From Dimorphilus gyrociliatus (lineage: Eukaryota; Animalia; Annelida): DNA of 64,000 bases. Numbering within the stretch: the stretch's first letter is position 1; each line of letters begins with the position of its first letter. Under the pieces are notes generated by a model, which was given only the letters and a program-made list of their open reading frames with translations, was not told where the DNA came from and did not search any database. A program made the position numbers and the translations under genes. This document shows positions 10,398-52,011 of this stretch, piece by piece. Location of the stretch: positions 1,232,916-1,296,915 of the forward strand of contig CAJFCJ010000020.1 in assembly GCA_904063045.1 (NCBI GenBank). The letters run 5' to 3'.

Positions 10398-11160
10398 TTT
10401 TTTTAAATTAAAATATCTATTGTCTATTTAATATTGATTTAATTAAATCTTAATTGGTAAAAAAAATATCAGTATTTGAGGATAATTTATTGAGATCCTT
10501 TTGTTTTTATATGTTAAACTTTCAGCGTATTTGAAGTATCTATTTCTACATATTTTATTAGGTGTTAACTTTAAATACGAATTAAATGCTTTATATATAA
10601 ATATTTTCAATATTTTCAACAATTATACAATTGTGTAAGCAAATGGATTTGTCAACTTATAATTACCTTTAGAGGAGTTTGCTTATCTTCAGTTCAATAT
10701 TCCTGTATCAAATTTTGAAGGCCATTAATTAATCAATAGTTGTCTTTGTTTGGATTGTAAATAATAAGTAAAAATTAACTTTATTAATGATTATATGGAA
10801 CGTTAATTGTTTTTTTTTTTCTAAAAAAAATTTTAAGCATCAATATAAGCTATTTAAAGTACGCGAATTCTAGAAAGGAGTTGATGAAAATTAATATCTT
10901 CATTTCGTGCTGTTTTCTATAATAAAAACTTCTTGGTAGTTTTCATTGTTTAACAATCATGCCTTAGAATCCTAAAAATAACATAAAAATTGTGCAATTT
11001 TTGCGAAAAACTCTGAAGCATGTCATTGTATTACTAAATTAATTGTGTAATATTGAGTGTAAACTGGTAATTCGAAAATTTCAGCGTGTTAGCACACACG
11101 TTTAATAGTCTTTATTAAATCATAGATCCTGTCGCACTTTGGTACGATAATTGATCCATC

Positions 11161-14049
11161 ATGCAGGTCTCTAATCCAAACGATGTAAAAATATATAATC
11201 TGAGCGTTGGAAAATCATTACCGGAGGTAAATGACAATTTTTTAAATTTAAGAGCGATAATAGAGTGAATTTACTTACAGTGGCTTTCTGATAGAGCTAA
11301 AAGAAATTTATTAAAAAAAGATATAGGTAAATATCCTATATAATGCATAATGCTAACCCAATTCTATAATATTTTCATATTCCTATATTTATGAAGATGT
11401 CAGAAGACGTATTGAACTTATTCAAGATTTTGAGATGCCTACAGTTAGCAATTGCATCCAAATCACACCAGACAAACAATATATACTAGTGACTGGTAAT
11501 ATATCCTAAACTTTAATTATATTTCCTTATCTCTAACTAAATCCAGGGATATATAAGCCTCGTGTCAAATGTTATGATGTTAATCAACTATCTTTGAAAT
11601 TTGACCGAGGAATGGACGAAGAAGTCGCTCAGTTTCAAATAATATCAGAAGATTACTCGAAAATGGTATTTCTACAGGTAGATAGATTTGTTGAAATACA
11701 TGCTCAGGATGCTAAATACTATAGACTCAGACTACCAAGAGTTTGTAGAGATTTTCGATACCATAAACCAAGTTGTGATTTATATTTTGTAGGAAAAAGG
11801 TAGAACCTTTAGCAACATTTTTTTAATTTATTTAAACAAGTTCGTTGTTTATTTTTTAGCGACGAAATATACAGATTGAATTTAGAACAAGGAAAATTTG
11901 TTACTTCATTACAAACAGATGCTACGTAACTATTGAATATGTTATAATCCCAAAAATACCTCCATTAATTATATATTTCAAAATTCTAGAGATATAAATT
12001 GTTGTGATATTAACCCTCTTCATGATCTGTTTACTTGTGGAACAACAGAGGTTTCTTTTTTTATATAAGCCTAATTAGGATTTTTATTAATTCTGTGTTT
12101 CCTATACAAGGGCCATGTTGAATGTTGGGATCCAAGAACTAGGAGGAGGGCTGCTAAACTTGATTGCGGCTTAAGTACTCTCATGGAAAACGATATTGAG
12201 TACGTTAAATAACTTATTTTCAATCAAATTTTTCTTCAAAATTCCAAAAATATTAGCACAAAGAAAGTTCCGGCGATTACTCATATCAAACATCGAGATG
12301 GACTAAACATGGCTGTTGGAACGTCGACCGGTCACATTCTTCTATATGATATCCGATCTAGTAAACCTTTATTGGTAAAAGATCACAACTATGGCTTGCC
12401 CATTAAAAGTATCAACTTTAAGAGTGATCCAGATTTAGTTTTGTCTTCTGATACGAAAATTTTAAAATTATGGCATAGAAATACGGTAAGTCACAAATGA
12501 AATCGTAAATCAAATATATTTAATCACTCTATTAATATTAGGGTCAAGCATATACTTCAATTGAACCGGGAAGTAATCTAAATGCCTGCTGTACTTTTCC
12601 CGATAGTGGTCTTATTTTTATGGCAAACGAAGCTCCGAAAGTTTTGGCTTATTATATTCCCGTTTGTCTATTAAGTTAAAGCGGCTTAATTATAGTTATC
12701 TAGGTTTTTTTTACAAATAGGCTTTAGGAGCAGCTCCCAAATGGTGTTCTTTCTTAGACAACTTGACAGAAGAACTAGAAGAAGATCCAGAACCTACAGT
12801 TTATGATGACTACAAATTTGTAACCAGAACAGAACTGGAATCATTACATTTAAGTCATTTAATTGGCTCTAAAATGTTACGAGCCTACATGCATGGTTAT
12901 TTTATGGATCTAAGGCTATACAATAAAGCCAAATCAATAATTCAGCCATTTAAATATACTGAATACAAGAAAGCTAAGATTAAGGAAAAGATTGAGAAAG
13001 AGCGAGAAGAAAGAGTTAAAGTAAAGGTAAGTAAAGATATATGTTTTTTTAAATAATAGAACATCACAGAAAACTAACATAACGCATTCAAATCAGAAAC
13101 TGCCTAATGTCAACAAAGCTCTTGCTGAAAAGTTAACATTTGCAGAACAGGAAGGAAGCAAGAAAGAGAAATTGGTTAATATTTTTCTTCTAATTTATAA
13201 TTAAGATACTAAAAGATACTAAAAATATATTTTATTTTAGAGAGCTGAAACTTTACTTAAAGACGACCGTTTCTCCAAAATATTTAAAGATCCTGCTTTC
13301 CAAGTTGATGAAGAATCGGAAGAATATAGGTTATTGAATCCTGTAGTTTCGAAACTAGATAAAAAGAAAAAAAAGAGTACGCTGCAGGATCAATTTGAAG
13401 AAGTTGAAGACGAATCAGAATCTGAGAGCTCTGATGACGATCGACAATGGACTGAAGAAGTTAAAAAGCAATACAGGTAATAATTATATATGTTTCATCG
13501 TCTCAAGTTAACAAAATTATTTTTTTTATATATATCTAGAGAGATTGCTAGAGCGAAGAAAGGCGAAAAAATGAGAGAGAGAGATGATTTACGAGACGAA
13601 GACTTAACAATAAGGAAAACTAAACTTATGTCACTAAAGGATAATCATTTTGAAACTGACAGTCGGGAAGCGAAGCGAAAAAGAAAGCTTGCAAAGTAAG
13701 AGTTGATATTCTGACGAAAATTGTTCATTGACACAAAATGTTTAATTTCTTTTTAGGAAAACTTTAGGAGAATTGGTGAAAGAAGAGAATGAAGGAGGTA
13801 TGATTAGTCAGAGAAGAAACATGTCTGGAAATATTGAGATGACATTTTCGTTAAGAAAGGTACTTAAAAATTCACAAACTTTTAGTTGAATACGTTTAAT
13901 ATAATTTTTCAAATTGCTTATAGAATAAAAAGGATGAAGAGCAGAAAGAAGCTTTGCGAGAACATCGAAAAGAAAGACAGAAAATAAGAAGATCGGCCGG
14001 CCATCTTACTAGAGGGAGAGGAAAATCAAATTTTTGGAAGAGAACTTAA
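11161..14049 (+). CDS. NOL10: Nucleolar protein 10 (Enp2 homologue; WD40 + NUC153), many short introns
   Basis: MQVSNPNDVKIYNLSVGKSLPE|WLSDRAKR start; RRIELIQDFEMP; YKPRVKCYD; APKWCSFLDNLTEELEE; LRAYMHGYFMD; DDRFSKIFKDPAFQVDE; TAA at 14047-14049. Confidence 0.95.
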
Positions 14050-34521: not shown

Positions 34522-34798
34522 ACCGCTTCTCACCGATCTATTGGTAACCGGTTGACCGGTTTGAAAAAACTGAAAGCGGAAATAGGAGGAGCGTAATTAA
34601 AACTAGTCTTTCTTTTTACAATTCACATTTTTCACTCGAACTGTCTACGTTTCACATTAAGTTTCTCCATCAAACTAAAACGATATATGGATAAAATGAT
34701 TCAATATTTAATTAATTAACTCTTCCTGGCTATTCAAATTTTGTTTGCTTTCTCATGACATTTTGATATATCTATGACAAACCAGTTAGCTTGAGAAA

Positions 34799-37700
34799 AT
34801 GTCTGATACTGCAACGGCATTCCTGCATATAGGAGACATTGTCTCTCTTTATGCAGAAGGGAGCTCCAGCAATGGATTTATGTCAACTCTCGGGTATGTC
34901 AAGTTTTATAATTGCGTAATCAACAGTCGCTGAAATTGTGACTTTTCGCTTGCAGATTAGTAGATGATCGATGTGTAGTACAACCAAGTAGCGGTGACTT
35001 GAATAATCCACCAAAAAAATTTAGAGGTAAAAACATTCTATTTGCTTATAAGGTTATCGATTATCAGTTATCTGTCAAATGCAGATTGCCTTTTTAAAAT
35101 ATGTCCTATGAACCGTTATTCGGCCCAAAAACAATTTTGGAAGGCCACGAAACAACATGCTCCCCATACAGACGGAACATTATTGAAGAAACTACAGGTT
35201 CGTTAAATTGTAAATTCCCCCTGGCTTTCCAAATAGCATCAATTTTATCTATAATTTAAGTAGTTTTATCTAAAACTTTGATAAGCTGTAAAGAATCGTA
35301 ACTGATGAGGAATTTCTCTTGATAAAATTTATTTGGATTTGAGAGAAATTGTATTATTAAATTATAGAAATTCATATGTCAATTAGGAACGTTGTAAATG
35401 CAACGTACAAATAGATTTAGTTATGGCAGTACTCTGTCGTAATTATGCATTAATTGATAAAATATATATAGCACTGTGGAAATTAACGTATATATATATA
35501 TTTATATAAGTATATATATTCATATTCATTTTCATAGCATGCTGCCGATTTGGAGAAGAAACAGAATGAAAATGAAAACACGAAGCTATTGGGTGATATT
35601 GTCCAGTATGGGGGTGTTATTCAGGTAGAAAATTAGCTTTTATTTACGAAATTCAATGGTCTAATTGACATTTATAATTCAGCTTCTTCACGTTAAATCA
35701 AATAAATATCTTACGGTCAACAAAAGGCTTCCGGCACTTAAGGAAAAGAATGCAATGAGGGTAATGCTTGATGCTTCTGGAAATGAGGGATCTTGGTTCT
35801 ATATTGTTCCATTCTATAAATTACGTAGTCCAGGCGATAGCGTTAGTTTAAATCGCTTTTAGAATTCAGTTTTAATCCGGGTGTGGTTTTAATATGAATC
35901 CTACAGGTTGTTGTTGGAGATAAAGTCATCTTAAATCCTGTAAATGCTGGGCAACCTTTACACGCTAGTAAAGCGGAACTAGACGATAACCCAGGTAAAT
36001 TAATTAGCAATTGGTTTGAAAAAGATTACCAAGCTTAAGATGGACAGTTGATGCGACTTAATTGTATTACATAGGTTGTCGCGAAGTAAATTCAGTACAA
36101 TGCAACACAAGCTGGAAAATTACCCTCTTTATGAATCATAAGGAAAACAACGACGACTATTTAAAAGGGGGTGACGTTGTTAGGTTATTTCACGCCGAAC
36201 AAGAAAAATTCCTCACTGGGGACGAATACAAGAAAAAGCAATATGTATTTCTTAGGACTACAGGGCGTACTTCAGCTACAGCAGCTACGTCCTCAAAAGC
36301 TCTCTGGGAGGTAGAAGTTGTTCAATTAGATCCTTGTAGAGGAGGTGCCGGACAATGGAAGTCGTTGTTCAGGTTTAAGCATTTGGCAACTGGTCAATAT
36401 TTGGCAGCGGAGGTAAATAAAGAGAATGAATCTTGAAACTTTTTGGATATCTCTTATTTCTTATTGAAGAAATCTCATAAAATATTTACAATTACAGGTG
36501 GATAACGACGAAACACCAGATATTATGCGTTCAAAGCTAAAGGCTGGTTTCCAAGTACTTCATCTAGTATGCGTTCCCCACGGTAATGATCCAGCTTCTG
36601 TCTTCGAATTAGATCCTACAACAATGACAAAGCAAGAAAACTTTGTACCAAGGTTTGTACTTTCCACTAAAGATTTATAACCTTTTATAAATGCAAAAAA
36701 AAGATGCCATCGCAATAGGTTCTGCAGTGTAAACTGCGTCGTCTAATGATGATTTTTCAGACAATGTCACGTTCGTTTACGGCACTACGAAACGGAGCTA
36801 TGGGTCCACAGCACTAATTTGCAATTGCATTATCATTTCGATATAAATCAGGACGGCGACAGAGCATGTTATAAGGTTATTGGTCATTTGGCTTATGAAC
36901 ATTTTTTTTAAAAGAATTCTGTAGAACCTGTTGCTGTGGGCTTCTTTTTCGTTAATTACTTTTCAACACTGCTTTCGATTAGCATGATTTTTTTTAATTC
37001 TACTTTTTAAATAATCAAAAAAAAAACAACGATTGGCAGTTTATAATATTACTAACTGTTTGCAATTGCGGTGCTGCTTGTTTTTTTTACGCAGATCGTC
37101 CTTCGTAAGGCTTAGACATTTGTTCACGAATACGTGGGTACATTCCACGTCGATTCCGATTGATAAAGAAGAGGAAAAACCTATTATGAGTAAGGTAGTA
37201 ACTAATTTTTCTTCACTCTGTAACTACTAATTGCTTGTAGCTTATTAATTCTCATTCCATAATATGATTTTTATAGCGTTAATATTTTGCTGGATTTTAA
37301 GTCTATATCTATTTAAATAGGATCTAATGCAAAATTAATATTATGAAATAACATCTAACACAGATTGACTTTAAATCCAGTTTTTTACGTATTGTCTATT
37401 CTATATTTAAGGTGGTAATATAATATTGCAAACATTATAGCTTGGATGTGCTAGAACGAAAGAAGACAAGGAAGCTTTTGCAATTGTTCCCGTTTCCCCT
37501 CAAGAAGTAAGGGATTTAGATTTTGCAAATGACGCTTCGAAAGTTTTGCAAGCAGCTGCTAATGAGTTGGATAGGGGGAATTTAAATCAAACTCAACGTC
37601 GTTTAATTGAACAATTGCTGAGAGAAATAATATGCTTTGTGGCCCTATTGGATACACAATCAACGGTTGATCCATTAGAAGTTGTGATCATTAAACCTGA

Positions 37701-40700
37701 CAGGGAACGCCCAAAGCTATTGAGAGAACAAAATGTTTTGAAGCAACTTTTTAGGATTCTTCAAGCTCCATTTCAGGGTGATAATCCACAATTTCGTTTA
37801 GAAGATTTAAAAGGAAATAAACACGCTGGCTATAAATATATATGTAAATTATGCTATCGAATACTTAAACTATCACAACAAAGTTATCGAAAAAATCAGG
37901 AATATATCGCAAAACATTTCGCCTTTATGCAAAAGCAGATTGGTTATGACATCTTAGCAGAAGATACAATAACCGCCTTGTTACATAACAACAGAAAATT
38001 ACTAGAAAAACATATAAATGAATCAGAAATAGAAACTTTTGTAAGCTTAGTTAGGGAAAATGGAGAATCTAGGTAAATTATCAACTATTAATCTTTTTTT
38101 TTCTTTTTTAAATTAACTGTTTAAGATAATTAGCTTTAATGATAAATATTTTTTTAAAGAGCTAATTATTTTATATCTCTTTTCATTTTAAAATAAATTT
38201 AGATTTCTTGATTACCTATCGGATTTGTGCGTCTCCAACAATGTAGCCATTGCTCGTACACAAGAATTAATTTGCAAGTCAGTCTTGTGTCCAAAAAATC
38301 AGGACATTTTAATAAATACGAGGTAAGAAATGTTCTCGAAAAGAGAGATTAGTTATTTTAAGTATTTTATACATTGTAGGAATTTAACTATAAATGTATA
38401 CCGTATATATATATTTATATATGTTCTTCTGTTGCAGCTGTGCTAGAGAAAAAACCGAAATTTTGCAAACTGAATATGAGAATGGTGTTGAAAAAAGAGT
38501 ATTTGAGTCAGAAGGAAAAATTGAACAAATTTATATAAAGATTACGAATAGGGAAGATCCCACTGGACCGAGAACAAATCTATTGCTACATGAAGTTGCT
38601 GATGTTGTGAAAGGTGGCATTTTAAGATATCCGAATACATTCGAAAAGCAAAAGAAGCTATTAGATTATTATCAGTGAGTTAAAGATATATGCACTATAT
38701 ACATATATACAGTATACACTGTATATTTTATTTTGTCTTGTTTTTTATACATTTATAAATATATAAATCTAATCTATACAGGCATCAGCTAGACTTGTTC
38801 GCCAATATGTGTATGGATCGTCAGTACCTGGCTATAAATAATATTCAATTTAAAATCGAATTAATGCTAAGGTAAAAATCCTTTTTATACTTTTAAGAGG
38901 CATTAATATTTAAAAAAAAACGAAACAAATAGATGTATTGCTGATGAAGAGTTCCCGGATGACTTACGAGCTTCGTTTTGCCGTCTATTCATTCATATGC
39001 ACGTTGACAGAGATCCACAAGAGACTGTTACCCCAGTTAAATATGCACGTCTTTGGGATGATATTCCGACAACTATATCAATTGACAATTATGAAAAAGG
39101 TAAAGCTAAAGAGAAATGTGAAGAACGAAAGAAATTTCAAAAAACAATTAAATTCGTTGAGGAATATTTGACAAACGTTGCTGTGTCTGCAAAATCTTTA
39201 TCAAGTATGGACAGTGGCAATAATTCTTTAACTTTAGAAGTTGTAAAATTAGCTAGACATCTTATATATTTTGGATTCTACTCTTTTAATGAATTATTAA
39301 ATTTAACAAAAACACTTCTTTCAATTTTGGATTGCGTAACTAATAGTACTGCTCCTACTGCTCAAGTTGATGTTAATTCCTTAGCTATGATGAAACCTGG
39401 TTTACATAATATAGCTAGTGTACTAGCTCAAGCGCAAAAAACGGTTCAGAAATCTGACGAAGAAGACGTTATTGTAATGAATACTAAACTGAAAATAATA
39501 GAGATCCTACAGGTGAGTATCATAAATACAATTATTAGGACATATTTCAATAAGTTTTTAGGAAAGACGCATATTTTCAAATAAGTTATTGACAGTTTAT
39601 TATGGATGTGAGGAAGGATTATCGCATCACGTGCGTCTTATCAATATTTAAAAAAGAATTCGACGCCAATGCAATGCAATCTGCAGGTTAAAAAAATTAG
39701 AAGCGCTACTAGATTTATTAACACTATTCTTAAAAAACACGCTAATCTAAATTTTTACTAATCTGCTTAATACGATATTTTCATTGATTTTATTTATAAA
39801 AAAAAACAAAACACTATTCATGTATACGCACTAGGTTTAAAAAAAAGAAGTCAGTAATCAAACAGATAGTATAAAGTGGAAAAAAAAAGAAAAATTGTAT
39901 TAGTTAATTGTATTAATAATCTTTTGTTCTTGAATGAAAAATCTTTTTCTTTTTTTTTTTTAAAACACATCAAAACGTAAAATTGCTACAGTTTATATTG
40001 AATGTTCGATTGGACTTTCGAATTTCCTGTATTCTATCGGTCTTCAAACGAGATCACCGAGCCGGAAACGGTGAGAGGAGGATATTTTCAGTTCATTTCG
40101 TTTCCATTTTTTCCTGCACGTTTAAAAAAAAAACGGCATGTCTGCACGTATACCTTTTTTCTCATACAATAGAAAAAAATTTATTTTTATTCCTTGGAGA
40201 AAACAGGAATAAATGGGTCATGTCTGAAAATAAATCTAAAAGGGACGAGAGATTATCTAAGGAATAATAATTCTAAAAAGTCCTTTTTATATTTAAAATA
40301 GAAAACATTAGTTGCTTATTGTGCCTTTTTCTCTTTATATGATTAGCCTTATACAAGTATATTAATGAGTATAAGCATGTAGATATTATATTTATATAAT
40401 TTCTACATGTCTCTATAATTTACAATTTAATGTATATAGAGTGGTAAAGAGCTCTTATGTTGATTTATCTTATATCCATCTATCAATCTATTGTGCTGTC
40501 TTTGCACAGATATATATATATATATAACTGTATTATATATTAATATATATATATATATATATATATACAGTATACTGTATATATAACTACAGTATATATC
40601 TACATATATAATATACCTTATATCTATAATAATAATAATTCACCTTATACCCTTACATGTTTATACCTTAAACAAATTATTTAAATATCCGTATTTTATT

Positions 40701-43700
40701 AATATATATTTTGTTTTCAACTTTAGGTTTGGATTTGGAGAGTATAGCCGCACAAGCCGAAGATATATTTGGCGGAAGGTAGGTTAAATATTATTTAAAA
40801 ATTTACAATAGATTTATAAATAATTAAATGAAAAAAAATAATAATCTATTCGTGTCCAGCAACTACAGAAGGTATTGTAATTATTAAATTATGTTAGGGC
40901 ACATTTTGGCGCACGAACAACTTTTTTTTTTCTTTTTGTTTTTTAAAACATTTTTTTCTCATTATATATATTTTTTAATATATGAAAAATTGAGATTATT
41001 GTTGTTTATTTAGTATTTACATATATAATATACACATATACTGTATATTTATAATGTACTCGATATTAATTATTTTCAATTATATAATTGTTTTTTTTTA
41101 ATTTATATTTACTTTTGAATAAAATAGTGACTACAGTGCGGAATTGGATCTTGATCGACAAGGGGGTAGAATGTTTTTGAGGGTTCTACTCAATTTGGTT
41201 ATGCACAATTACCCACCGTTAGTCTCTGGGGCTCTACAGTTGCTCTTTAGACATTTTTCTCAAAGGCAAGAAGTTCTTTTAGCGTTCGAACAAGTTCAAT
41301 TATTAGTTCAGGCCGACGACGTCGAGAATTATAAAGTTATAAAATCAAATCTTGATCAACTAAGAATTTTGGTTGAGAAATCTGAATTATGGGTATATAA
41401 ATCCAGCAAAAAGAAAAAGAAATCTGATAGTTCGAAGGATGAGAAGAAAAAGGAGAAGAAGAGACCGTTAGATATAATTACACCTACTTTGGGGATGTCT
41501 CATATCGATTTGAATCATGGTCCAAAAATTGATTCTACAGCTGCCGAAAATTATAAGTCAATTCAGGAGATATTAAAGACATTTATAGCCTTATGTTATA
41601 ATGATGCAACAGCAGCCCCTAAAGTATACGAACAGCGTTTGCTAAGGAATATGAACGCTCATGAAGTTGTTTTGGAACTTTTGCAAATACCGTACGAAAA
41701 AAGCGAAGATCATAGAATGATTGAAATTATGCAAAAGGCGCATGAATTTTTACAAAAATTCTGCCTGAGCAATGCCCCAAATCAACAGCTATTATTTGGA
41801 AGTTTAGAGTTATTTTTAACGCCAGGTTTATTGGAAGCTCAAACAGCTAAAGCAATATTTAAAGATAATCCAACTCTATGTAACGAAGTATCGGAGAAGG
41901 TTGTTAATCATTTTGTCCATTGTATTGAAACGAATGGAACTTACGTTGAATATCTACATTTTTTACAAACAATTGTCAAATGTGACAAACAATATATAAG
42001 GAAAGCGCAGACGGCAGTAATGGCAGAGGTTGGTAAATTATTATACTTTTAATAAGACATACTTTAAATTATTATAAATTAGGACTCAGCCTAAAAGAAA
42101 AAGAATAAATTATATTTGTTTTTTTCTTTTTTTAAAATATTAATATCTTTATTAATTCTATAAGATATAAATAATTTATTATTATATTTAACGTTTTTTT
42201 TTTCCTTTTTTTTTGGTTTACTTTCATTTTTTTTTTTGCCTTATAAAATAGATTTCTCGTATAAATTCTCAGGTATTTTCACATAATAATTTTTTTCATT
42301 ATTTCTCTCTCTCTCTCTCTCTCTTATTTCTTTCTTTTTTTTTTCAACAAAATTTCCTAATTTTCTCTTCTTTTTCATTTTTAATACTACGAAAAGAAAT
42401 TAAAAAAAGCCTTAAAAATAATTCATTTTAATAATTACTATAGCTTATATACTTTTTCTTGCTATAGTTTATCATTCGTTCATTTTCTTCTTTCTATCTC
42501 TCCATCTTTTTAACTTGTACAAAAACGCAAAACCATACAATTACAATTTAATTAGCTAAACTAATTCATAAAAATAGAAATAAAATATTTTTTTCTTATG
42601 GAAATTCATCCAAAAAAATCAAAAAAAAAAATCATTAATGAATTTACTAATTACAATTTCATGAATGCTTAAAAACACTCTTATTGCATCTCTGAATTAG
42701 CGCAACGCTGAAGTGATATATAATCGAAAAGCTCAAGATCTAGTTATGGCTTCCGTTAGTACTAATCGTAGAGTATTCGCTTTATTGTTTCGTTTTACAA
42801 AAAAAAACAGAAATTTTTGCACTTGATTATTCTTTTATTTATTATTGTTATAGTTATTTTGTTTTTTTCGTTTCGTTTATGTACGGTATACATTCATTTA
42901 TATATTTATATATATATATATATGTATATATATATTTATATTTATATATGTATATATTTTGTCACTATGTTATTAATGGTTTAGAAATTTGATGGCTTAA
43001 GTCTAGCGAAAGTAGCAAGAATTGACAAAAGTATTAAATATATCGTGTTGCAATTTTGTAGTTTTTTTTTTATATAGCTAAAGAAGATTTGTATTATTTT
43101 CACCACAAAAAAGAAACACATTAGCAATTATTATTTTACTTTACAGACTACACCAAAAAAGGAGTATTTACGTTGAGGGAGGGTAATGTCACTGGGGAAA
43201 TGAGAGGTTTGGGAGAAATTTTAAGCTAGACTTAAGCCTTTTTTTTTTGATTGATTTTAATTCAGGAATTTCTTTTTTTCCCCTTCTCTTTTTAGCTGAT
43301 TAATGTTGGGGAAGATGTATTAGTTTTCTATAATGAACAAAATTTTGGCAAGTTGGTCACGCTGATGGAAGAACAAAAGAATAAACTACTCGATCATAGA
43401 TCACCATTAAATTATCATATTAACTTGGTGAAATTGCTGTCTTGCTGTACAGAGGGGAAGAATGTTTATACCGAAATCAAATGTCAATCTCTTCTTCCTC
43501 TAGAGGATATCGTCAGAGTTGTATGTCACGATACTTGCCTGGTTGCCGTTAAAGAAGCCTATATTAACTTTCTAAATCATTGTTATGTTGACACCGAAAT
43601 GGAAGCAAAAGATATATACAGTTCAAACTATATGTGGCAATTGTTTGAGAATTTCATTGAAGATATGAATAAAGTTTTGAAGATTGCTGCAATGGATTCG

Positions 43701-45188
43701 TCAAAAAAAACCCCGGAAGATATAGAGATGGAAAATTATGTTACATTCACAGTAACAAGCGTCATAACGACGTTCTTTTCGTCGAAATTCGCTGAGCAAG
43801 TTCAAACAAGACAGGGAATATTTGCGCATTTATTAGAGACGGCTTTTGACATATTACAATTACATTTAGGATCTTTGGAACAATCGCAACTAAGTGAAAC
43901 AAAGAAATGTGTTGAATTGTTGTATCAAGTAGGTCTGTATTGTTTTCACCTTCAAAAACTCTCTTTCATTCATTAACTTTAACTAATTATGTTCTTAAAT
44001 ATTAGGCAAAGATAGACATATAGCAGTAAATCCTGACCTTCAAGCTCGTATTGAAAAAACCTTAAAAAAACCAACTAAAGCTATCAAATTAGCAGCAGAT
44101 AAATTTGCAAGAAAGATAAAAAGCAAAATGGAACAAAATTTAAAACTATCTCAGAGTAATCGATCAATTCTGGAAGGTTTACAAGATATTGTTAGTCTAC
44201 TAAGTGATCAACTGAAACCTCTTGTGCAAGCCGAACTTTCAGTCCTAGTAGATGTTTTACATCATCCAGAACTACTGTTTCCCGCTGGTACTGATAGCAG
44301 AAAGAAGTGCGAAAGTGGTGGTTTCATATCCAGGTATAGTATTTACGCCCTTTATTGTTTTCTTAATATATCCTTATTTTGTATAACAGATTAATTAAAC
44401 ACACGGAACAATTGTTGGATGAAAAAGAAGAGAAACTATGTATAAAAGTTCTGCAAACTTTAAAAGATATGATGACAGTTGATATAGACTACGGAGAAAA
44501 GGTAGGATAGATTTATTAGGATAACAATCATAAATAATGATAAAAGCTTAAAATTTCCTTTAAAATAATAATTTTACCTTTTCTTTATACATAATATTTT
44601 TTTTCATCTGACATTAGAATTAAAAATAATAATTTTGCATTTAATTTTGCCCTTTTTTTTACCTTTAACCCTCCAAAAAATAACCTTAAACCTTAAAAAA
44701 GAGTACAGAGGTGCAGTAATTATAGACATCGTCGTATTTTCAATATTTTTATATTTATAGCACGATATGATCACTTGAAATTGAGCATTTTTTTTTCTCT
44801 TACCGTTTATCATAGGCCATCACTGAAGAAACGAGCACGCACAAAGCGGTGAGATGTTGATTATCCAACATATTTTTTTTTTATTATATATTTAACACTT
44901 TTAGAAGTATGGTAAATAGAATAAAAGAAATAGGTTTCCATTATCCTCCCAAATAACCATTCGTTTCTAGGATTAATTTTATTTTTATACTAAATATTTT
45001 TGGTTGAAAGGCAGCTTATTGCAATTTAGTTATTACTTTTTACTTTTGCTTTGTTTGTCTGTTTTTTTTTTTTGCACTGGGTAAAAGTATTTACACCTTA
45101 GATTGATTTGTGGAACAAAATTGGTTGGGAATCTGGTATGCAATTCTCGGAATTAGGGAGACAAAGAGTATGAAAATATGTTGTATTA

Positions 45189-45236
<48 letters not shown>

Positions 45237-48200
45237 TATATATAAATGTATATATATATATACACCTAGTTATCTGTTTGTAACATACTTAACAGTGTAC
45301 TTTATTTTATTTTTCTCTTCCAGAGTAAAAGAATTTGCTTTTTCTTGCTCTCTTTTACTGACGAATGTTTTTTTTTGTTATATTTTATTAGGGTGAAGCT
45401 CTTAGACAGTCTCTCCTTACACGCTATTATGAAGGATTTGGACAGTCGCGTAGAAGGAGTAGTATATCTTTTACTGCAGACAGAATTAAGCCAAATGTCA
45501 TTTCTAGGGCAGAAATGACTCTTCACCATGTCCAGTGCCATTTAGATCGGGAAGGAGCTACTGATCTTGTTGTTGATTTAATTATAAGTGACCATTCCCA
45601 CCGAATCTTCTTAGAAACAATTGAACTTGGAATAGCCTTATTGGAAGGTGGTAATAGAGATATTCAAAAATCCTTATTGAAGAGATTACAAAATGATAAG
45701 AATTCGGAAAAGTTTTTCAAGGTTTTCTTTGATAGAATGCAATTGGCTCAACAAGAAATTAAATCCACTTCTAATGTTGGAACATCCGATGGCCTTGGCG
45801 AACAAAAGGATGAAGAAAAGGATGTCACACAACAAATACACCAGTACAAACAGACGAATGGGAGTATAATGAGCCATAATATGAAAGAGGAAATGAATGA
45901 AGCTGCCGTTAGCACTAGTAAAGCTATTCTTACAGTTAGAAAGCAGAGGCTAGATACCCTAGCTACCGGCAGTCCGGATGAACTTCAAACGGACGATGGT
46001 TTGGATAAAGACAAACACAGGGATGAAAAAAAAATGTCTGCAGATATTCTAGTAATGCAACCAATACTAAGATTTCTGCAGTTGTGTTGTGAAAATCATA
46101 ACTTAGAGCTTCAAAATTTCTTAAGAATTCAAAATAACAAAAATAATTATAACTTAGTTTGTGAATCTTTACAATTTCTTGATTGTATTTGTGGATCTAC
46201 CACTGGAGGATTAGGCCTTTTAGGTTTATATATTAATGAGGAAAATGTTGACTTGATTAATCAAACATTAGAAACCTTAACGGAATATTGTCAAGGTTCT
46301 ATTTCTTTTACTTTATTGATATTTTATTAATAAGATACATTTTTTTTGCAAAATAGGACCATGTCATGAAAACCAAGATGCTATTGCTAGACACGAATCA
46401 AATGGTATTGATATCATAATTGCCTTAATATTAAATGATATAAATCCTCTTGGTAAAAAGAGAATTGATTTGGTATTGAAGTTGAAGGTAGAAATAGCAT
46501 TTTTCTATAAAACGTCAACTAATTATTTTTATTTGTTTTAATACAAATGAATGAAACGATAGAACAACGCGTCCAAATTGTTACTTGCCATAATGGAGAG
46601 TCGTTACGAAGGGGAAAACGCTGAAAGAATACTATATAACATGAGCCCTAAACAATTAGTAAGTAAACAGGTCTCCCATAAATACTTTGTTTCTCCCTTT
46701 TTTGATATGTCAGTATTTAGTTCTCAATTATGGAATATGGTTTTCAAGATTTTGAAAAGGTTACGCATGATATAGAAAACACACGCTTTATCTTACACTT
46801 TTTGCCCCAATAAAAATACAAATATGAGTTTTTTAATTTCAATTTTATATTTTAATGTTTTTTCATCACAAATTATAGGTTGACGTTGCCGTGAAAGCCT
46901 ATAATCAATACGAACAGTTGGAAGAAGAAGATTGTTTAGAAGACGACGACGATGATGATCAAATTAATCCTAGAGATGTTGGTCATAATATTTATATTTT
47001 GGCTCATCAATTAGCCCATCATAATAAAGAGTTGGCAGCTCTCTTAAAGAATCCTGATCCTCCAAATCCGGCTCTAACCTATTACGCAAAGCACACCGGG
47101 CAAATTGAAATTGTAAGGCACGATAGAACTCTGGAACAGATTGTCTTCCCCATACCTGAAATTTGCGAATACCTTACAGCAGAAACAAAAGTAAAACTTT
47201 ATCAAACAGCCGAAAGGGATGATCAAGGTAGTAAGGTAACTGACTTTTTTGAGAGACATACAACTTTGTTTGATGAAATGAAATGGCAAAAGAAATTACG
47301 TTCAAATCCAGTATTATTTTGGGTATCTTCCCATATGAGACTTTGGAGTGGAATAAGTTTCAACTTGGCCATACTCTGCAACTTAATTGTAGCCCTGTTT
47401 TATCCCTTCTCTTCTGGACCAGGAACTTTAGATAGAAGATTATCGGGTCTGATATGGATGGCTATGATTGTGTCATTGGTTGTCGTTATAAGTACATCAA
47501 AAACTATTGGTTATCGGACATTGGTTGCTTCTGTAATATTACGGCTTATATTTTCGATTGGTCTTTCGACAACTTTATTAATAATTGGTTCCTTACACGT
47601 TCTGAATAGTACTATATTTATGATTGCTCTGATGGGTAATAGTGGAACATTTACGAAAAGTTTCAGAGAAATATTAACCGACTTCGAGTTTGTCTACCAT
47701 ATCGGCTATATAAGCATTTCACTTAGTGGAACTTTCTTTCATCCTTTCTTCTTTTCACTCCTCTTGCTAGATGTTGTATATCGTGAAGAGACGCTAGTAA
47801 ATGTCATAAGGAGTGTTACAAAAAATGGTCGCTCTATCCTCTTGACAGCAGTACTTGCTGTTATTCTGATATATTTGTTCTCGATAATCGGCTTTATATT
47901 CTTCCAAGATGATTTCCTTATGGAGGTTGCTCCCCTGGAGCCGATCGTAAACACTGACTTGGTTAAAAATGCTGCTAAAATGGCGACGAACCTCGGGCAA
48001 ACTGAAAGTTGCTCGTCTGAGAAAGAGTGTAATATGACATCGACAGAAGCAAGCTTATACGGAGTCGAAGATGATAGCGAAGTTCGAGAAAGGCATTGCG
48101 ATTCGTTGATTATGTGTATTGTAACCACTCTAAACGAAGGTTTACGTAACGGGGGCGGCATTGGTGACATTTTAAGAAAACCTAGTCAAAAGGTACGTTC

Positions 48201-49620
48201 TATTAAACATTTAAAGCTACGCTCCTTAAACAATAACGTTTATTTACCATGCCTAATATATTTTTATTTATATTATATTTAACTAATTCATACTAATCGG
48301 AATATTAAAAATTTTGGAAACGGTTTTAGGAACCTCTCTTTATAGCTCGTATTATTTATGATCTCCTCTTCTTCTTCATCGTCATTATTATCGTTCTAAA
48401 TTTGATTTTTGGAGTTATCATCGATACGTTTGCCGACTTAAGAAGTGAAAAGCAAAATAAAGAAGAAATATTAAAGAATACATGCTTCGTTTGCGGTTAT
48501 TATTAAGATATCGTCGTATTCTGCACGGATAATTCTTTTGTTTAGCTGTTTTATCCGTTTTAAAAAGCAATCATAGTCAATAGATTGTCATTAGATCTAC
48601 TTTATGTAGTTCAAACGTTAACCTTTTTTAATGGCAATAATTGAGAGTTTTTCTACCTTTTTTTTAAAAAAAAAAGGATGTACTTACCCAGCCACGCATC
48701 TATTCTACTCACCTAAACGATTGTCTACTTTCATTAATCTTGTTTTTTTTTGGTTTTTGAATGTTGTATTATTTTAGGAATCCCTCTTCATATTCCGAGT
48801 TATCTACGATCTTCTCTTCTATTTTATATTAATCATCATCGTTCTCAACCTTATCTTTGGAGTGATCATCGATACGTTTGCCGATTTGAGAACAGAGAAG
48901 CAGAATAAAGAAGAAATTCTTAAGAATACTTGTTTTATTTGTGGTTTGTTTTAGTTTGTAGTAATTTTTTTTTGCTTGTAGTTAATTTATTGTTGTGTAA
49001 ATTAATAATTATTAAAGAAAGAACACATTCCTTTGTAACCCTCTTATAATAATTTTTTCTCTTTTAAGGAAATCGTTAAGCAATTATTTTTTTAAGCGGA
49101 TATCCTTTTGGTTTTTATTCATTTAACAGGTTTGGATCGTTCATCATTCGATAATAAGTCGATTTCTTTCGAGGAACATTGTAAATCGGAACATAACATG
49201 TGGCACTATTTGTACTTCATTGTTTTGATTAAAGTAAAAGATCCAACCGAGTATACTGGACCAGAGAGTTTTGTGCACTCTATGATAGCCGAAAAGAATC
49301 TAGATTGGTTTCCACGCATGCGTGCCATGTCATTAGCGGCAGATGAAGGTGAATCAGAGCAAAATGAGTTGAGAAATTTACAAACAGCATTGGACGACAC
49401 TAAAGATTTAGTAAAACAGCTTTGCTCTCAACTGAACGAACTGAAAGATCAGGTAAGATGATTTTCTTTTGAAAAAGTTGTAAAAGTTAATATATAATTT
49501 ACTGATTGATTAATTGAATAGATGATGGAACAAAGAAAGCAGAAGCAGAGGTTTAATCTTATGCAGCCATCAATGAATCCTCTTTTGCCTACCCCAAACA
49601 CTTTAGATAACGCGCAATAA
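34799..49620 (+). CDS. ITPR: Inositol 1,4,5-trisphosphate receptor, about 27 constitutive exon positions plus multiple alternative exons
   Basis: [21 protein letters not shown] start; FLRTTGR and QSYRKNQE ligand motifs; RIH domains; [10 protein letters not shown] selectivity filter; [14 protein letters not shown] gate helix; TCF[VI]CG...HCKSEHNMW zinc finger; TAA at 49618-49620. Confidence 0.98.
36761..36875 (+). other. ITPR mutually exclusive exon 1A (115 nt): [39 protein letters not shown]
   Basis: TTTCAG acceptor, AAG|GTTATT donor, phase 2 to 0 like 1B; homologous VRLRH...WVHST. Confidence 0.85.
37095..37194 (+). other. ITPR mutually exclusive exon 1B (100 nt): [34 protein letters not shown]
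   Basis: ACGCAG acceptor, AAG|GTAGTA donor; canonical IP3R sequence. Confidence 0.93.
39596..39686 (+). other. ITPR mutually exclusive exon 2A (91 nt): [30 protein letters not shown]
   Basis: GACAG acceptor, G|GTTAAA donor, phase 0 to 1. Confidence 0.85.
39992..40070 (+). other. ITPR mutually exclusive exon 2B (79 nt): [26 protein letters not shown]
   Basis: CTACAG acceptor, G|GTGAGA donor, phase 0 to 1. Confidence 0.88.
42701..42754 (+). other. ITPR alternative exon 3B (54 nt): [18 protein letters not shown]
   Basis: AATTAG acceptor, GTTAGT donor; homologous to and the same length as the last 54 nt (41975-42028) of the upstream exon. Confidence 0.7.
44816..44848 (+). other. ITPR 33-nt cassette microexon [11 protein letters not shown] at the SII-equivalent position
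   Basis: Polypyrimidine...CATAG acceptor, GCG|GTGAGA donor, in frame phase 0, between DYGEK and GEALRQ. Confidence 0.75.
45195..45233. repeat. (TA)n microsatellite in an ITPR intron
   Basis: About 19 TA units. Confidence 0.95.
48330..48495 (+). other. ITPR mutually exclusive pore exon 4A (166 nt): [55 protein letters not shown]
   Basis: TTTTAG acceptor, G|GTTATT donor, phase 0 to 1. Confidence 0.93.
48778..48943 (+). other. ITPR mutually exclusive pore exon 4B (166 nt): [55 protein letters not shown]
   Basis: TTTTAG acceptor, G|GTTTGT donor, same length and phase as 4A. Confidence 0.93.
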
Positions 49621-49884: not shown

Positions 49885-52011
49885 TCAAAAAGTGCTTGGA
49901 GAAGGTGTGTAACAAGCGTTACCTGAGACACCACCCATGTCACCGAATGTGTTTGCGTAGCTTGTTTTCAAAAAGTTGACATAGTTATGCATAGATCTGT
50001 TTGTAGCAGTAGATTGCTCCAACCTTTCTTTTAGATCGTATAATTTAGAATTCATTTTCCTTTCGGATTCATCTCTCTCTCTCCTAACCCTGGCCACTTC
50101 TGCCCTTGCAGCAGATAGTTCAGCCTCTAATTCACTAATTCTTGCTACTGCGGCCCTTTCTTTTCCGCAGGACTTTTGCCTAGCTTGTTCAGTTATTCTT
50201 CTTGATTCTGTAACAGCCGTCTCAAGCTGACGAGAAAGGCCCGCAACTTCTTTTGACCGTTCCTCCAATTGAACTTGGATTCTGTGCACCGTCTCATCTC
50301 TTTGAGCCAAGGATGACTGTAATTCTACATTCCTCGCCTCCAATTCTCGAACCCTTCTTTCCACATTTGATAGTTCATGCACGTGAACGTCGTTTTGTAT
50401 TTGACGATGTTGAGATGTTTGATGAAGTTTCGATTTCAGTTCATTTTCTTTCTTTTCGGATTCATTTAACTTCTGTGAAACATCGGCTAATTTTAATTCA
50501 GTTGCTTTAAGCAACTCTGGGACAGGTTCAAGCTGAGCCAGACGTTGCTGAACGCGGGAACGAACCTCTTGCACAGCTATGCCGCACTCCTTTTGTAACT
50601 TCGCCGTTAGACGTTGCTCTTCTTCCAGCCTCGATAACGCGTCGTCAGCTTCTTCTCTGGCCTTTTTCAACTGTTGTTTATACTCTTCTAATAAGCGTTC
50701 AGCCTGACCAAGACTTTCCCGGGCATTGTGAATTTCAGTCTCGGCTCTTTCATACTCCATTCGAGACATCCTCTCTCTTGAAATGGCCTCCCTTTCTCTC
50801 TGTTCCATTCTATCAATATCAACTTTGGTATCTTGTTCAATGTTCAGCAATCGATTGTGTAGAGCGGTAACTTGAGCATCTAAAGCCGATTTTTCTTTCC
50901 TGAGTAATTCATTTTCGGTTTTTAATTCCATTACATCAGCATCCCTTTGGGTCACTTGTTCATTAATAATTTGCAGTTTTTGCTCGCTTGTATTAGCTCT
51001 TTCTTTTTGTACTCTTGTTGCTTTTTTTAAAGCTTCTTTATTCTTTGTATACTTTTCGCGTGTTGATGCCAGCATATTTCGAGCATATTCCAGGTCTAAT
51101 CGGGCAGTAGCTAGGTCAGATTCGAGGGTGCGAACCTGAACAGCTAAACGATTGCAATCGGCCTCTTTCGCTTTGAAGGCTTTTTGTAGATGAGCTCTTG
51201 TTGTTTCTAAGGCTGTTTGAGCTCCCGAGAGTGCTAAATTTTCATCTTTTTGGGCTTCAGCTGTCATATGAACTTCTTGCATAGTTCTTTCTTGTTGAGA
51301 CAACGCTTCCTCAGCTTTCGCTAACTTATGGAGAAGTAAATCGCGTTGCTCTATAAGGCGATGAGTAGCAGCTTCAGAGTCGTGCGTTTCATGCAGTAAA
51401 CTTACCAAAATTCGAGCTCCCCTTTCGAAATCTCCCAATTTGGATACCAGTAGGTCTCTTTGCTTGTTAATCATATTCCAATCGCTACCACATAGTTTAC
51501 GCTCATCTCGAAATCTCCTCATAACATCACGAAGACCATCGGCATGACGAATTGAAGCTGTTGCATCTAATTCAACAGAGACAAGTTTGTGGAGAAGAGC
51601 CTCCTTTCCCTTACTTTTAGCGACATCGTCAGTTTCTTTCCTCAAGGATCTCTCAAGAGCAACCTCTGCTTTCAAAGACCCAACTTCAGAAACCAATTCT
51701 CCTACCCGACTTTCGTATTCATGCATCTTTACTCGGACATTATCTTCTTCTTCCGTTGAGACTTCAACTACTCTTGGACCGCCCGGAGCTGGTTCACTCG
51801 AAGCTAAACATCGAGATCGTATAGAGCTCTTTGCAGGTGGAGGTATCCATCCATGCTCTCTTTCCTTTATAGCTCTTCGAACGTCAGATTTCGAATGGGA
51901 TGAATCTAGTCTTTTTTTTACGTGTACATGAACAGCAGTATCCTCAGCAACATGCACATGTACTGGTGAGACTGCTCCCCCTCTTTCAACAGTCATGATG
52001 AGTTTCTGCAT
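49885..52011 (-). CDS. ODF2: Outer dense fibre protein 2/cenexin-like coiled-coil protein; CDS appears intronless (true start may be the MTVERG ATG)
   Basis: SPVHVHVAEDTAVHVHVKK and WIPPPAKSS motifs typical of the ODF2 N-terminus; long coiled coil; C-terminal MHNYVNFLKTSYANTFGD. Confidence 0.85.
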   Translation of the reverse strand: MQKLIMTVERGGAVSPVHVHVAEDTAVHVHVKKRLDSSHSKSDVRRAIKEREHGWIPPPAKSSIRSRCLASSEPAPGGPRVVEVSTEEEDNVRVKMHEYESRVGELVSEVGSLKAEVALERSLRKETDDVAKSKGKEALLHKLVSVELDATASIRHADGLRDVMRRFRDERKLCGSDWNMINKQRDLLVSKLGDFERGARILVSLLHETHDSEAATHRLIEQRDLLLHKLAKAEEALSQQERTMQEVHMTAEAQKDENLALSGAQTALETTRAHLQKAFKAKEADCNRLAVQVRTLESDLATARLDLEYARNMLASTREKYTKNKEALKKATRVQKERANTSEQKLQIINEQVTQRDADVMELKTENELLRKEKSALDAQVTALHNRLLNIEQDTKVDIDRMEQREREAISRERMSRMEYERAETEIHNARESLGQAERLLEEYKQQLKKAREEADDALSRLEEEQRLTAKLQKECGIAVQEVRSRVQQRLAQLEPVPELLKATELKLADVSQKLNESEKKENELKSKLHQTSQHRQIQNDVHVHELSNVERRVRELEARNVELQSSLAQRDETVHRIQVQLEERSKEVAGLSRQLETAVTESRRITEQARQKSCGKERAAVARISELEAELSAARAEVARVRRERDESERKMNSKLYDLKERLEQSTATNRSMHNYVNFLKTSYANTFGDMGGVSGNACYTPSPSTF

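Follow-up and report, generated by a model that had tools for sequence, protein, structure and literature searches.

Animal cells release calcium mainly through inositol 1,4,5-trisphosphate (IP3) receptors, or ITPRs. Studies of how these channels vary have dealt mostly with the three paralogues of vertebrates and with a small number of optional inserts. The closest described system in the same family is the splicing of vertebrate ITPR1 at three sites, SI, SII and SIII, of which SI likewise lies in beta-trefoil 2. All of these sites are optional insertions, none of which is known to swap homologous exons or to touch the S6 helix. Swaps of a pore-lining or gating helix by tandem-duplicated exons of equal length, with few residue changes, occur in CaV1.2 (exons 8/8a), in NaV channels (exon 5N/5A) and in insect para. 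These voltage-gated channels belong at the gene level to an unrelated superfamily, whereas the swap described here would take place in a tetrameric intracellular release channel. The gene in question lies in a stretch of 64,000 nucleotides (nt) of the Dimorphilus gyrociliatus genome (assembly GCA_904063045.1, contig CAJFCJ010000020.1, positions 1,232,916 to 1,296,915, forward strand; hereafter the window). It encodes an ITPR in which three exons were probably duplicated in tandem long ago, with each pair spliced as one copy or the other, the choice being enforced by the reading frame and probably steered by RNA stems. In this gene three structural elements, the pore-lining helix among them, would each be swapped between two homologous versions, both of which have been kept in evolution.

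Ryanodine receptors, the sister family of release channels, also have tandem-duplicated either/or exons (insect RyR and human RYR3). They form a separate family, and the RyR splice site that a review of insect channels gives as common is in the second SPRY domain, with none described for the pore. According to the same review, IP3R mRNA is alternatively spliced at one site, which human IP3R1 shares; the term "mutually exclusive" does not occur in that review. RYR3 and RyR figure in lists of human and fly tandem-duplicated exons, which contain no ITPR, and full-text literature searches combining either/or exons with the IP3 receptor returned nothing relevant. The searched literature and exon lists are thus consistent with the suggestion, made in the initial annotation of this locus, that the layout is undescribed for IP3 receptors. 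As far as checked, the multi-site either/or architecture is new for the ITPR family, and the mechanism is of a well-known kind.

The ITPR coding region occupies positions 34799-49620 of the window (+ strand) and matches the annotated D. gyrociliatus protein CAD5124255.1 (DgyrCDS12552; 2,698 amino acids, aa), which was found in the 90%-identity cluster reached from one ITPR exon. A 430-aa exon matched the solved ITPR1, ITPR2 and ITPR3 chains at E ~1e-147, with far weaker matches to ryanodine receptors. Among 1.8 billion representative proteins the top match was an ITPR1-type protein (54% identity), and identity to vertebrate ITPR1-3 was 52-55%. The annotated protein carried the Pfam domains that define the family: Ins145_P3_rec, MIR, RIH, RIH_assoc, and Ion_trans. 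The selectivity filter and S6 gate of the family were also present, as GGGIGD at the end of exon 24 and LIFGVIID in both versions of exon 25. The gene model, built from ungapped tblastn anchors and a script enumerating GT/GC..AG junctions, contained 27 constitutive exon positions, and the base isoform had an intact frame of 2,672 codons.

Self-comparison of translated segments revealed three pairs of adjacent, homologous exons, each pair encoding the same protein segment on the + strand. Exon 9A (36761-36875; 115 nt) and exon 9B (37095-37194; 100 nt) are separated by an intron of 219 nt (36876-37094) and matched each other at E 2e-5. Exon 15A (39596-39686; 91 nt) and exon 15B (39992-40070; 79 nt) matched at E 3e-8. 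Exon 25A (48330-48495) and exon 25B (48778-48943), both of 166 nt, shared 87% amino-acid identity. Altogether, the A and B copies differed by 24-62% of nucleotides. Each of the six exons had its own AG..GT boundaries and a length of 1 mod 3, and phase was shared within each pair, making the members interchangeable in frame. Inclusion of one member per pair gave an intact frame of 2,668-2,677 codons. Because all six exons are 1 mod 3, inclusion of both or neither member leads to an early stop a few dozen codons downstream. These stops fell at codons 413 (both) and 391 (neither) for exon 9, 1029 and 961 for exon 15, and 2575 and 2509 for exon 25, and the last junction was in every case over 200 nt further on. 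Nonsense-mediated decay would presumably remove such mRNAs.

The initial annotation had proposed one ITPR gene diversified by either/or exons and RNA stems. The core of that proposal holds, and the lengths (115/100, 91/79 and 166/166) and frame rule it gave were exact; the number of pairs had been overstated. Of the five homologous pairs claimed, three were found (exons 9, 15 and 25), the fourth was a 54-nt cassette, and a fifth was not recovered, as nothing but low-complexity TA/Ile-Tyr matches came out of all-against-all peptide searches of exons against introns. A match of 8 aa at 40307-40330 is probably due to chance. With three frame-enforced pairs instead of five, there are 8 either/or combinations and not the 32 channels first counted, and in-frame cassettes could add variants beyond these 8. 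Two other causes of exclusive splicing were rejected: steric exclusion, given introns of 219, 305 and 282 nt between the members, and U2/U12 incompatibility, there being no donor of the ATATCC or GTATCC form.

Each pair corresponded to a different structural element. Exon 9 encodes residues ~370-408, within the MIR domain/beta-trefoil 2 (232-422) and shortly ahead of the hinge segment KEDKEAF. Exon 9B is the canonical version of the last strands of this trefoil, and 9A is a diverged version that keeps VRLRH..WVHST and then departs from it. In the helical linker after ARM1, exon 15 supplies the highly conserved helix FILDVRLDYRISCLLSIFK, with 15B as the alternative version. In the ITPR1 chain of 3jav, exon 25 corresponded to residues 2560-2614, which comprise S6 and the first two zinc-finger cysteines. 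This last pair had been described as a pore-helix pair; the pair is real, but its product is the inner helix S6 together with the beginning of the zinc finger, and the pore helix is encoded by exon 24.

Exons 25A and 25B differed at seven of 55 residues (exon residues 2, 6, 8, 15, 18, 39 and 54), 25A being the version nearest to oyster and ITPR1. The gate motif LIFGVII was identical in the two, and LIFGVIID aligned to 3jav residues 2585-2592, with F2586 and I2590 of rat IP3R1 taken as the reference residues of the S6 gate. At exon residue 15 the two versions differ as F and Y: F is found in the solved ITPR1 and ITPR3, Y in the solved ITPR2, and both residues are widespread in animals. Judged from these alignments, the 9A/9B choice would vary the end of the IP3-binding beta-trefoil beside the hinge, 15A/15B would vary one helix of the post-ARM1 linker, and 25A/25B would vary the pore-lining S6 in its luminal half and leave the gate residues as they are. 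The isoforms would be natural channel variants with minimal differences (in S6, seven residues with the same gate), whose expression and recording could reveal the part played by the luminal half of S6 and by the hinge-side strands of the binding core.

Four runs in the Logan assemblies (SRR23372216, -28, -29 and -31) provided a close relative for comparison, with contigs obtained via the cluster member list. These contigs were 100% identical where they overlapped and jointly spanned the whole gene in the same order. Between the relative and the window, constitutive exons were 74-94% identical, and most introns barely aligned (40-77% for most). All alternative exons were present in the relative with AG/GT boundaries and an open frame, so that none of the six pair exons was absent or disrupted in the related species. 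Exons 9B, 15A, 15B, 25A and 25B, the 54-nt cassette (E17x), and the 12-, 33- and 66-nt cassettes were 91-100% identical to the relative, and exon 9A was 87% identical. Most alternative exons were closer to the relative than the constitutive ones, a usual trait of regulated exons. Conserved intron blocks clustered around the alternative exons; the 219-nt intron between 9A and 9B was 84-86% identical.

Long inverted repeats in the introns had also been reported at first. Using RNAalifold on the two species, folding of each species alone, and z-scores against shuffles, three conserved stems were found that beat shuffles; most of the other repeats were TA runs or polyA/polyT low complexity. The first is a long-range stem of ~20 bp (arms 36707-36727 and 36919-36939, + strand) that encloses exon 9A and both its splice sites. 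All 20 pairs were kept in the relative, with two A-U to G-U changes, and the stem came up again when the species were folded separately (z -4.3 and -3.0). The second is a hairpin in the intron between 9B and exon 10 (37289-37381, + strand; arms 37289-37303 and 37367-37381), which the two species share, one A-U pair having changed to C-G in a compensatory way (z -2.1 and -3.2). The third is a hairpin around the 15A acceptor (39561-39642, + strand; arms 39561-39572 and 39631-39642), identical in both species (z -2.6 and -3.2); it showed no covariation because both arms are invariant.

In RNA-guided exon choice as described for Dscam, 14-3-3zeta and MRP1, including looping-out stems (PMC6071210), there are likewise conserved intronic complements and a stem that loops out an exon. 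The docking-site/selector arrangement of the Dscam type differs, since each stem here would act on one exon, a comparison whose basis is two species only; no docking-site/selector pairing was found among the ITPR introns, where the stems were exon-specific and none was shared within a pair. The conserved intron sequence and the stems probably steer the choice of copy. The stem around 9A would loop out that exon and so favour 9B, which fits 9B as the main form (see below), and the hairpin on exon 15 would enclose the 15A acceptor.

A different cause of the choice is quite possible, though we consider it doubtful on balance: splice-site strength and protein factors alone may set it, the stems being by-products of conserved intron elements that bind protein. 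Covariation was indeed scarce, and with stems compared in two species most pairs were invariant, which speaks neither for nor against pairing. The candidate hairpin at the 15B donor folded no better than shuffles and was rejected, a point that also weighs against stems as a general guide, as does the 14-bp repeat at 42994/43225, whose upstream arm was not conserved. The pore pair lacked a docking/selector pattern, and its one 12-nt complement was weakened in the relative. Against protein factors as the sole cause stand the independent recovery of the 9A stem in both species, its two A-to-G changes, which lie opposite U and so keep the pairs, and the compensatory pair of the hairpin after 9B. 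Steering by stems is retained as a probable part of the preferred explanation.

Codon changes relative to the close relative were counted for each pair exon. The numbers of synonymous and non-synonymous changes were, respectively, 10 and 5 for 9A, 7 and 0 for 9B, 6 and 0 for 15A, 6 and 0 for 15B, 14 and 1 for 25A, and 14 and 0 for 25B. These counts indicate that all six pair exons are under purifying selection. As neutral decay would produce mostly non-synonymous changes together with frame breaks, the nearly complete restriction to synonymous changes argues that both members of a pair encode protein that matters.

RNA contigs from four public runs were aligned to window positions 36761-42760. 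Run X5 matched the window exactly and was spliced (same species), run X1 was a coral metatranscriptome with exact, spliced matches, and run X2 came from a related worm (~93% identity to the window). In the main X5 contig exon 9B was spliced to exon 8 on one side and to exon 10 on the other at a depth of 555, with a loose end at 37093 corresponding to the end of exon 8, and the 9B-exon 10 joint was also seen in X1 and in X2 (depth 26.3). Exon 9B is the main form. The joint of 9A to exon 10 was found in X2 (depth 14.3). For exon 15, X5 contained the joints of exon 14 to 15A and of 15A to exon 16 at a depth of 188 and the joint of 15B to exon 16 at a depth of 201, as compared with 8-13 for unspliced contigs around this exon; X1 also contained the joint of exon 14 to 15A. 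The two joints to exon 16 in X5 show that both copies of exon 15 are used, at similar levels. The annotated protein contains 9A, 15B, the 54-nt and 66-nt exons, and 25B.

Overall, RNA thus documented both members of the exon 15 pair, 9B in this species with 9A in its relative, and neither member of the exon 25 pair. Several of these observations count against regular either/or use at all three sites. Exon 9A had a depth of 0 in the same-species run X5, and its RNA support came from a short contig of the related worm with 28 nt on the shorter side of the joint, which makes the evidence fair and not strong. A rare 15A-15B product is possible, one joint of the read table being unseen. No splice junction was seen in RNA for 25A or 25B; the pore stretch had a word share of 0.83 in X5, a measure that counts intron too and so does not separate 25A from 25B. 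The annotated model is an EvidenceModeler consensus and for that reason gives only weak support for the use of each exon. It is conservation that suggests use of 25A.

These observations bear on the idea that each pair contains a decaying pseudo-exon, the relic of an old duplication, beside a partner that alone is used. The silence of 9A in X5, its place as the least constrained copy (10:5), and a 25A that lacks junction-level RNA support are what such a relic might show. In a relic, however, one would expect broken frames, lost splice sites and changes spread over all codon positions, whereas frame and AG/GT were kept in the relative and the changes were almost all synonymous (synonymous to non-synonymous 28:1 for the pore pair and 12:0 for the exon 15 pair); a single run moreover contained spliced 15A and spliced 15B at much the same depth. 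We regard decay as improbable. That the duplicated exons are an assembly artefact of collapsed haplotypes or a misjoined repeat, the real gene having single-copy exons, is next to inconceivable, as nothing was found in its favour, independent short-read assemblies of another species (four runs) gave the same order and spacing, the A and B copies are too different (24-62% of nucleotides), and RNA contigs join copies to flanking exons. Tandem duplication followed by regulated, frame-enforced choice remains the explanation that we favour and consider likely.

In the public data, words of this ITPR were also contained in the metatranscriptomes X1, X7 and X8 (coral or marine). Since the X1 contigs are exact and spliced, Dimorphilus or a very close relative was probably present in those samples.

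The age of the duplications could be addressed for the pore pair. Exons 25A and 25B differed from each other by 24 synonymous and 7 non-synonymous codons, and each differed from its own orthologue by 14 synonymous codons. The divergence between the copies exceeds that between orthologues, so the duplication of the pore exon predates the split of the two worms. In the oyster Saccostrea echinata a single pore exon lies between the neighbours of exon 25, and it is nearer to 25A (87% identical). In the bryozoan Bugula neritina (GCA_010799875.2), homology to exon 15 revealed two 97-nt copies of the same phase with AG/GT boundaries, ~640 nt apart (11042-11138 and 11774-11870 of locus L015). The annotated protein contains the first copy; the second has diverged strongly. 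The Bugula locus includes exon 15 and stops short of exon 9 and the pore. Two or three intron-poor ITPR loci (L006, L009 and L016) had single copies of the exons they cover (exon 9 is outside L009) and are uninformative about annelids. The upstream flank of the Lingula ITPR locus contained no exon 15, the locus ending too early to inform. A protein search with the vertebrate pore region returned vertebrate matches only and is likewise uninformative about invertebrates. In that group, the Chelonia mydas ITPR1 model (P0154) had a double score and the S6 motif twice, probably through duplication in assembly or annotation.

A broader and speculative interpretation, which we hold tentatively and think unlikely as a whole, is that either/or exons are an old, widespread lophotrochozoan route to functionally distinct IP3 receptors from one gene. 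On this interpretation the exon 15 pair would be older than the annelid-bryozoan split, because Bugula has two 97-nt copies; the S6 swap would alter conductance or gating; the 9A swap would alter IP3 sensitivity; and subunit mixing would do the work that three paralogues do in vertebrates. If it were true, the S6 swap would echo the F/Y difference between ITPR1/3 and ITPR2, and cells would tune calcium release via splicing and mixed tetramers. If the Bugula pair does share its origin with that of Dimorphilus, it would represent a feature of invertebrate IP3 receptors unreported in the searched papers and gene lists.

Intron lengths in the Dimorphilus gene formed distinct classes: twelve introns of 56-85 nt, five of 107-137 nt, and long introns of 340, 219, 246, 305, 656, 349, 1267, 890, 220, 282, and 186 nt. 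All introns of at least 186 nt flank or contain an alternative exon or candidate, with intron 3 (340 nt) as the sole exception. The link between long introns and alternative exons that had been noted at the outset was thus borne out, with 56-85 nt as the measured range of a short class first put at ~55 nt. Within intron 3, a 54-nt block (35231-35284) is kept in the relative; it has stop codons, contains no in-frame exon candidate, and may be regulatory. Being compact (15 kb, short introns), the gene suits the study of how stems and frame rules coordinate several either/or choices.

Besides the three pairs, in-frame cassettes of 54 and 66 nt and candidates of 12-39 nt would add further variants. 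Exon E17x (42701-42754, + strand; 54 nt) is a copy of the last 18 codons of exon 17. It is colinear with the end of that 901-nt exon, with eight of 18 codon residues identical, and is homologous to that end only. Its length of 0 mod 3 makes it a cassette and not a frame-enforced either/or exon, and its inclusion would repeat the terminal helix segment of exon 17. E17x was 93% identical to the relative (2 synonymous changes and 1 non-synonymous change) with conserved flanks; it is contained in the annotated protein and was skipped in the main X5 contig, in which exon 17 was joined directly to exon 18. A true substitution by E17x was rejected: the internal donor at 41975 (GTCAAA) is a weak one at which no joint was observed.

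The region of vertebrate SII corresponds to an intron here that contains two cassettes on the + strand: a microexon of 33 nt (44816-44848) and an exon of 66 nt (45102-45167; 22 aa), both of which align at the SII region. The 33-nt exon had one synonymous change relative to the relative, with the acceptor and 34 nt past the donor conserved. The 66-nt exon was 94% identical (2 synonymous changes and 1 non-synonymous change) and is contained in the annotated protein. Three further candidates were found on the + strand. A 12-nt candidate microexon in intron 16 (40860-40871; AG/GT, in frame, adding 4 aa) was identical at 12 of 12 positions, with ~65 nt of conserved flanks in an otherwise unalignable intron. 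A 21-nt candidate in intron 17 (42252-42272; ISRINSQ; AG/GT, open in phase 0) lies where 33 nt are 100% identical to the relative inside a diverged intron. A 39-nt candidate in intron 23 (46721-46759) is the weakest: the relative shares its length, frame and AG/GT, yet with five amino-acid changes. The exons of 12, 21, 33 and 39 nt are to be read as candidates, predicted from their conservation. The cassette microexons of the initial annotation are consistent with the conserved 33-nt exon, and the conserved in-frame candidates of 12, 21, 39 and 66 nt extend them.

The sole difference between the exon model and CAD5124255.1 was a run of 15 conserved aa in exon 11, where a 45-nt stretch (38278-38322, + strand) is removed by an internal alternative donor in the annotated model. 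The downstream donor at 38322 was used by RNA contigs of X5 and X1. The internal donor may be a 5' site of rare alternative use; otherwise it is a slip of the annotation.

An Rfam search gave no match within the ITPR gene. Upstream of it, ~240 nt before the start codon (34555-34798) showed exon-like conservation with the relative and are probably promoter or 5' untranslated region. Downstream, an open reading frame of 708 aa with coiled coils (49885-52011, - strand) lies tail-to-tail with the ITPR gene, ~265 nt past its stop. This neighbour keeps its order and strand in the relative, whose copy matches ODF2 domains.

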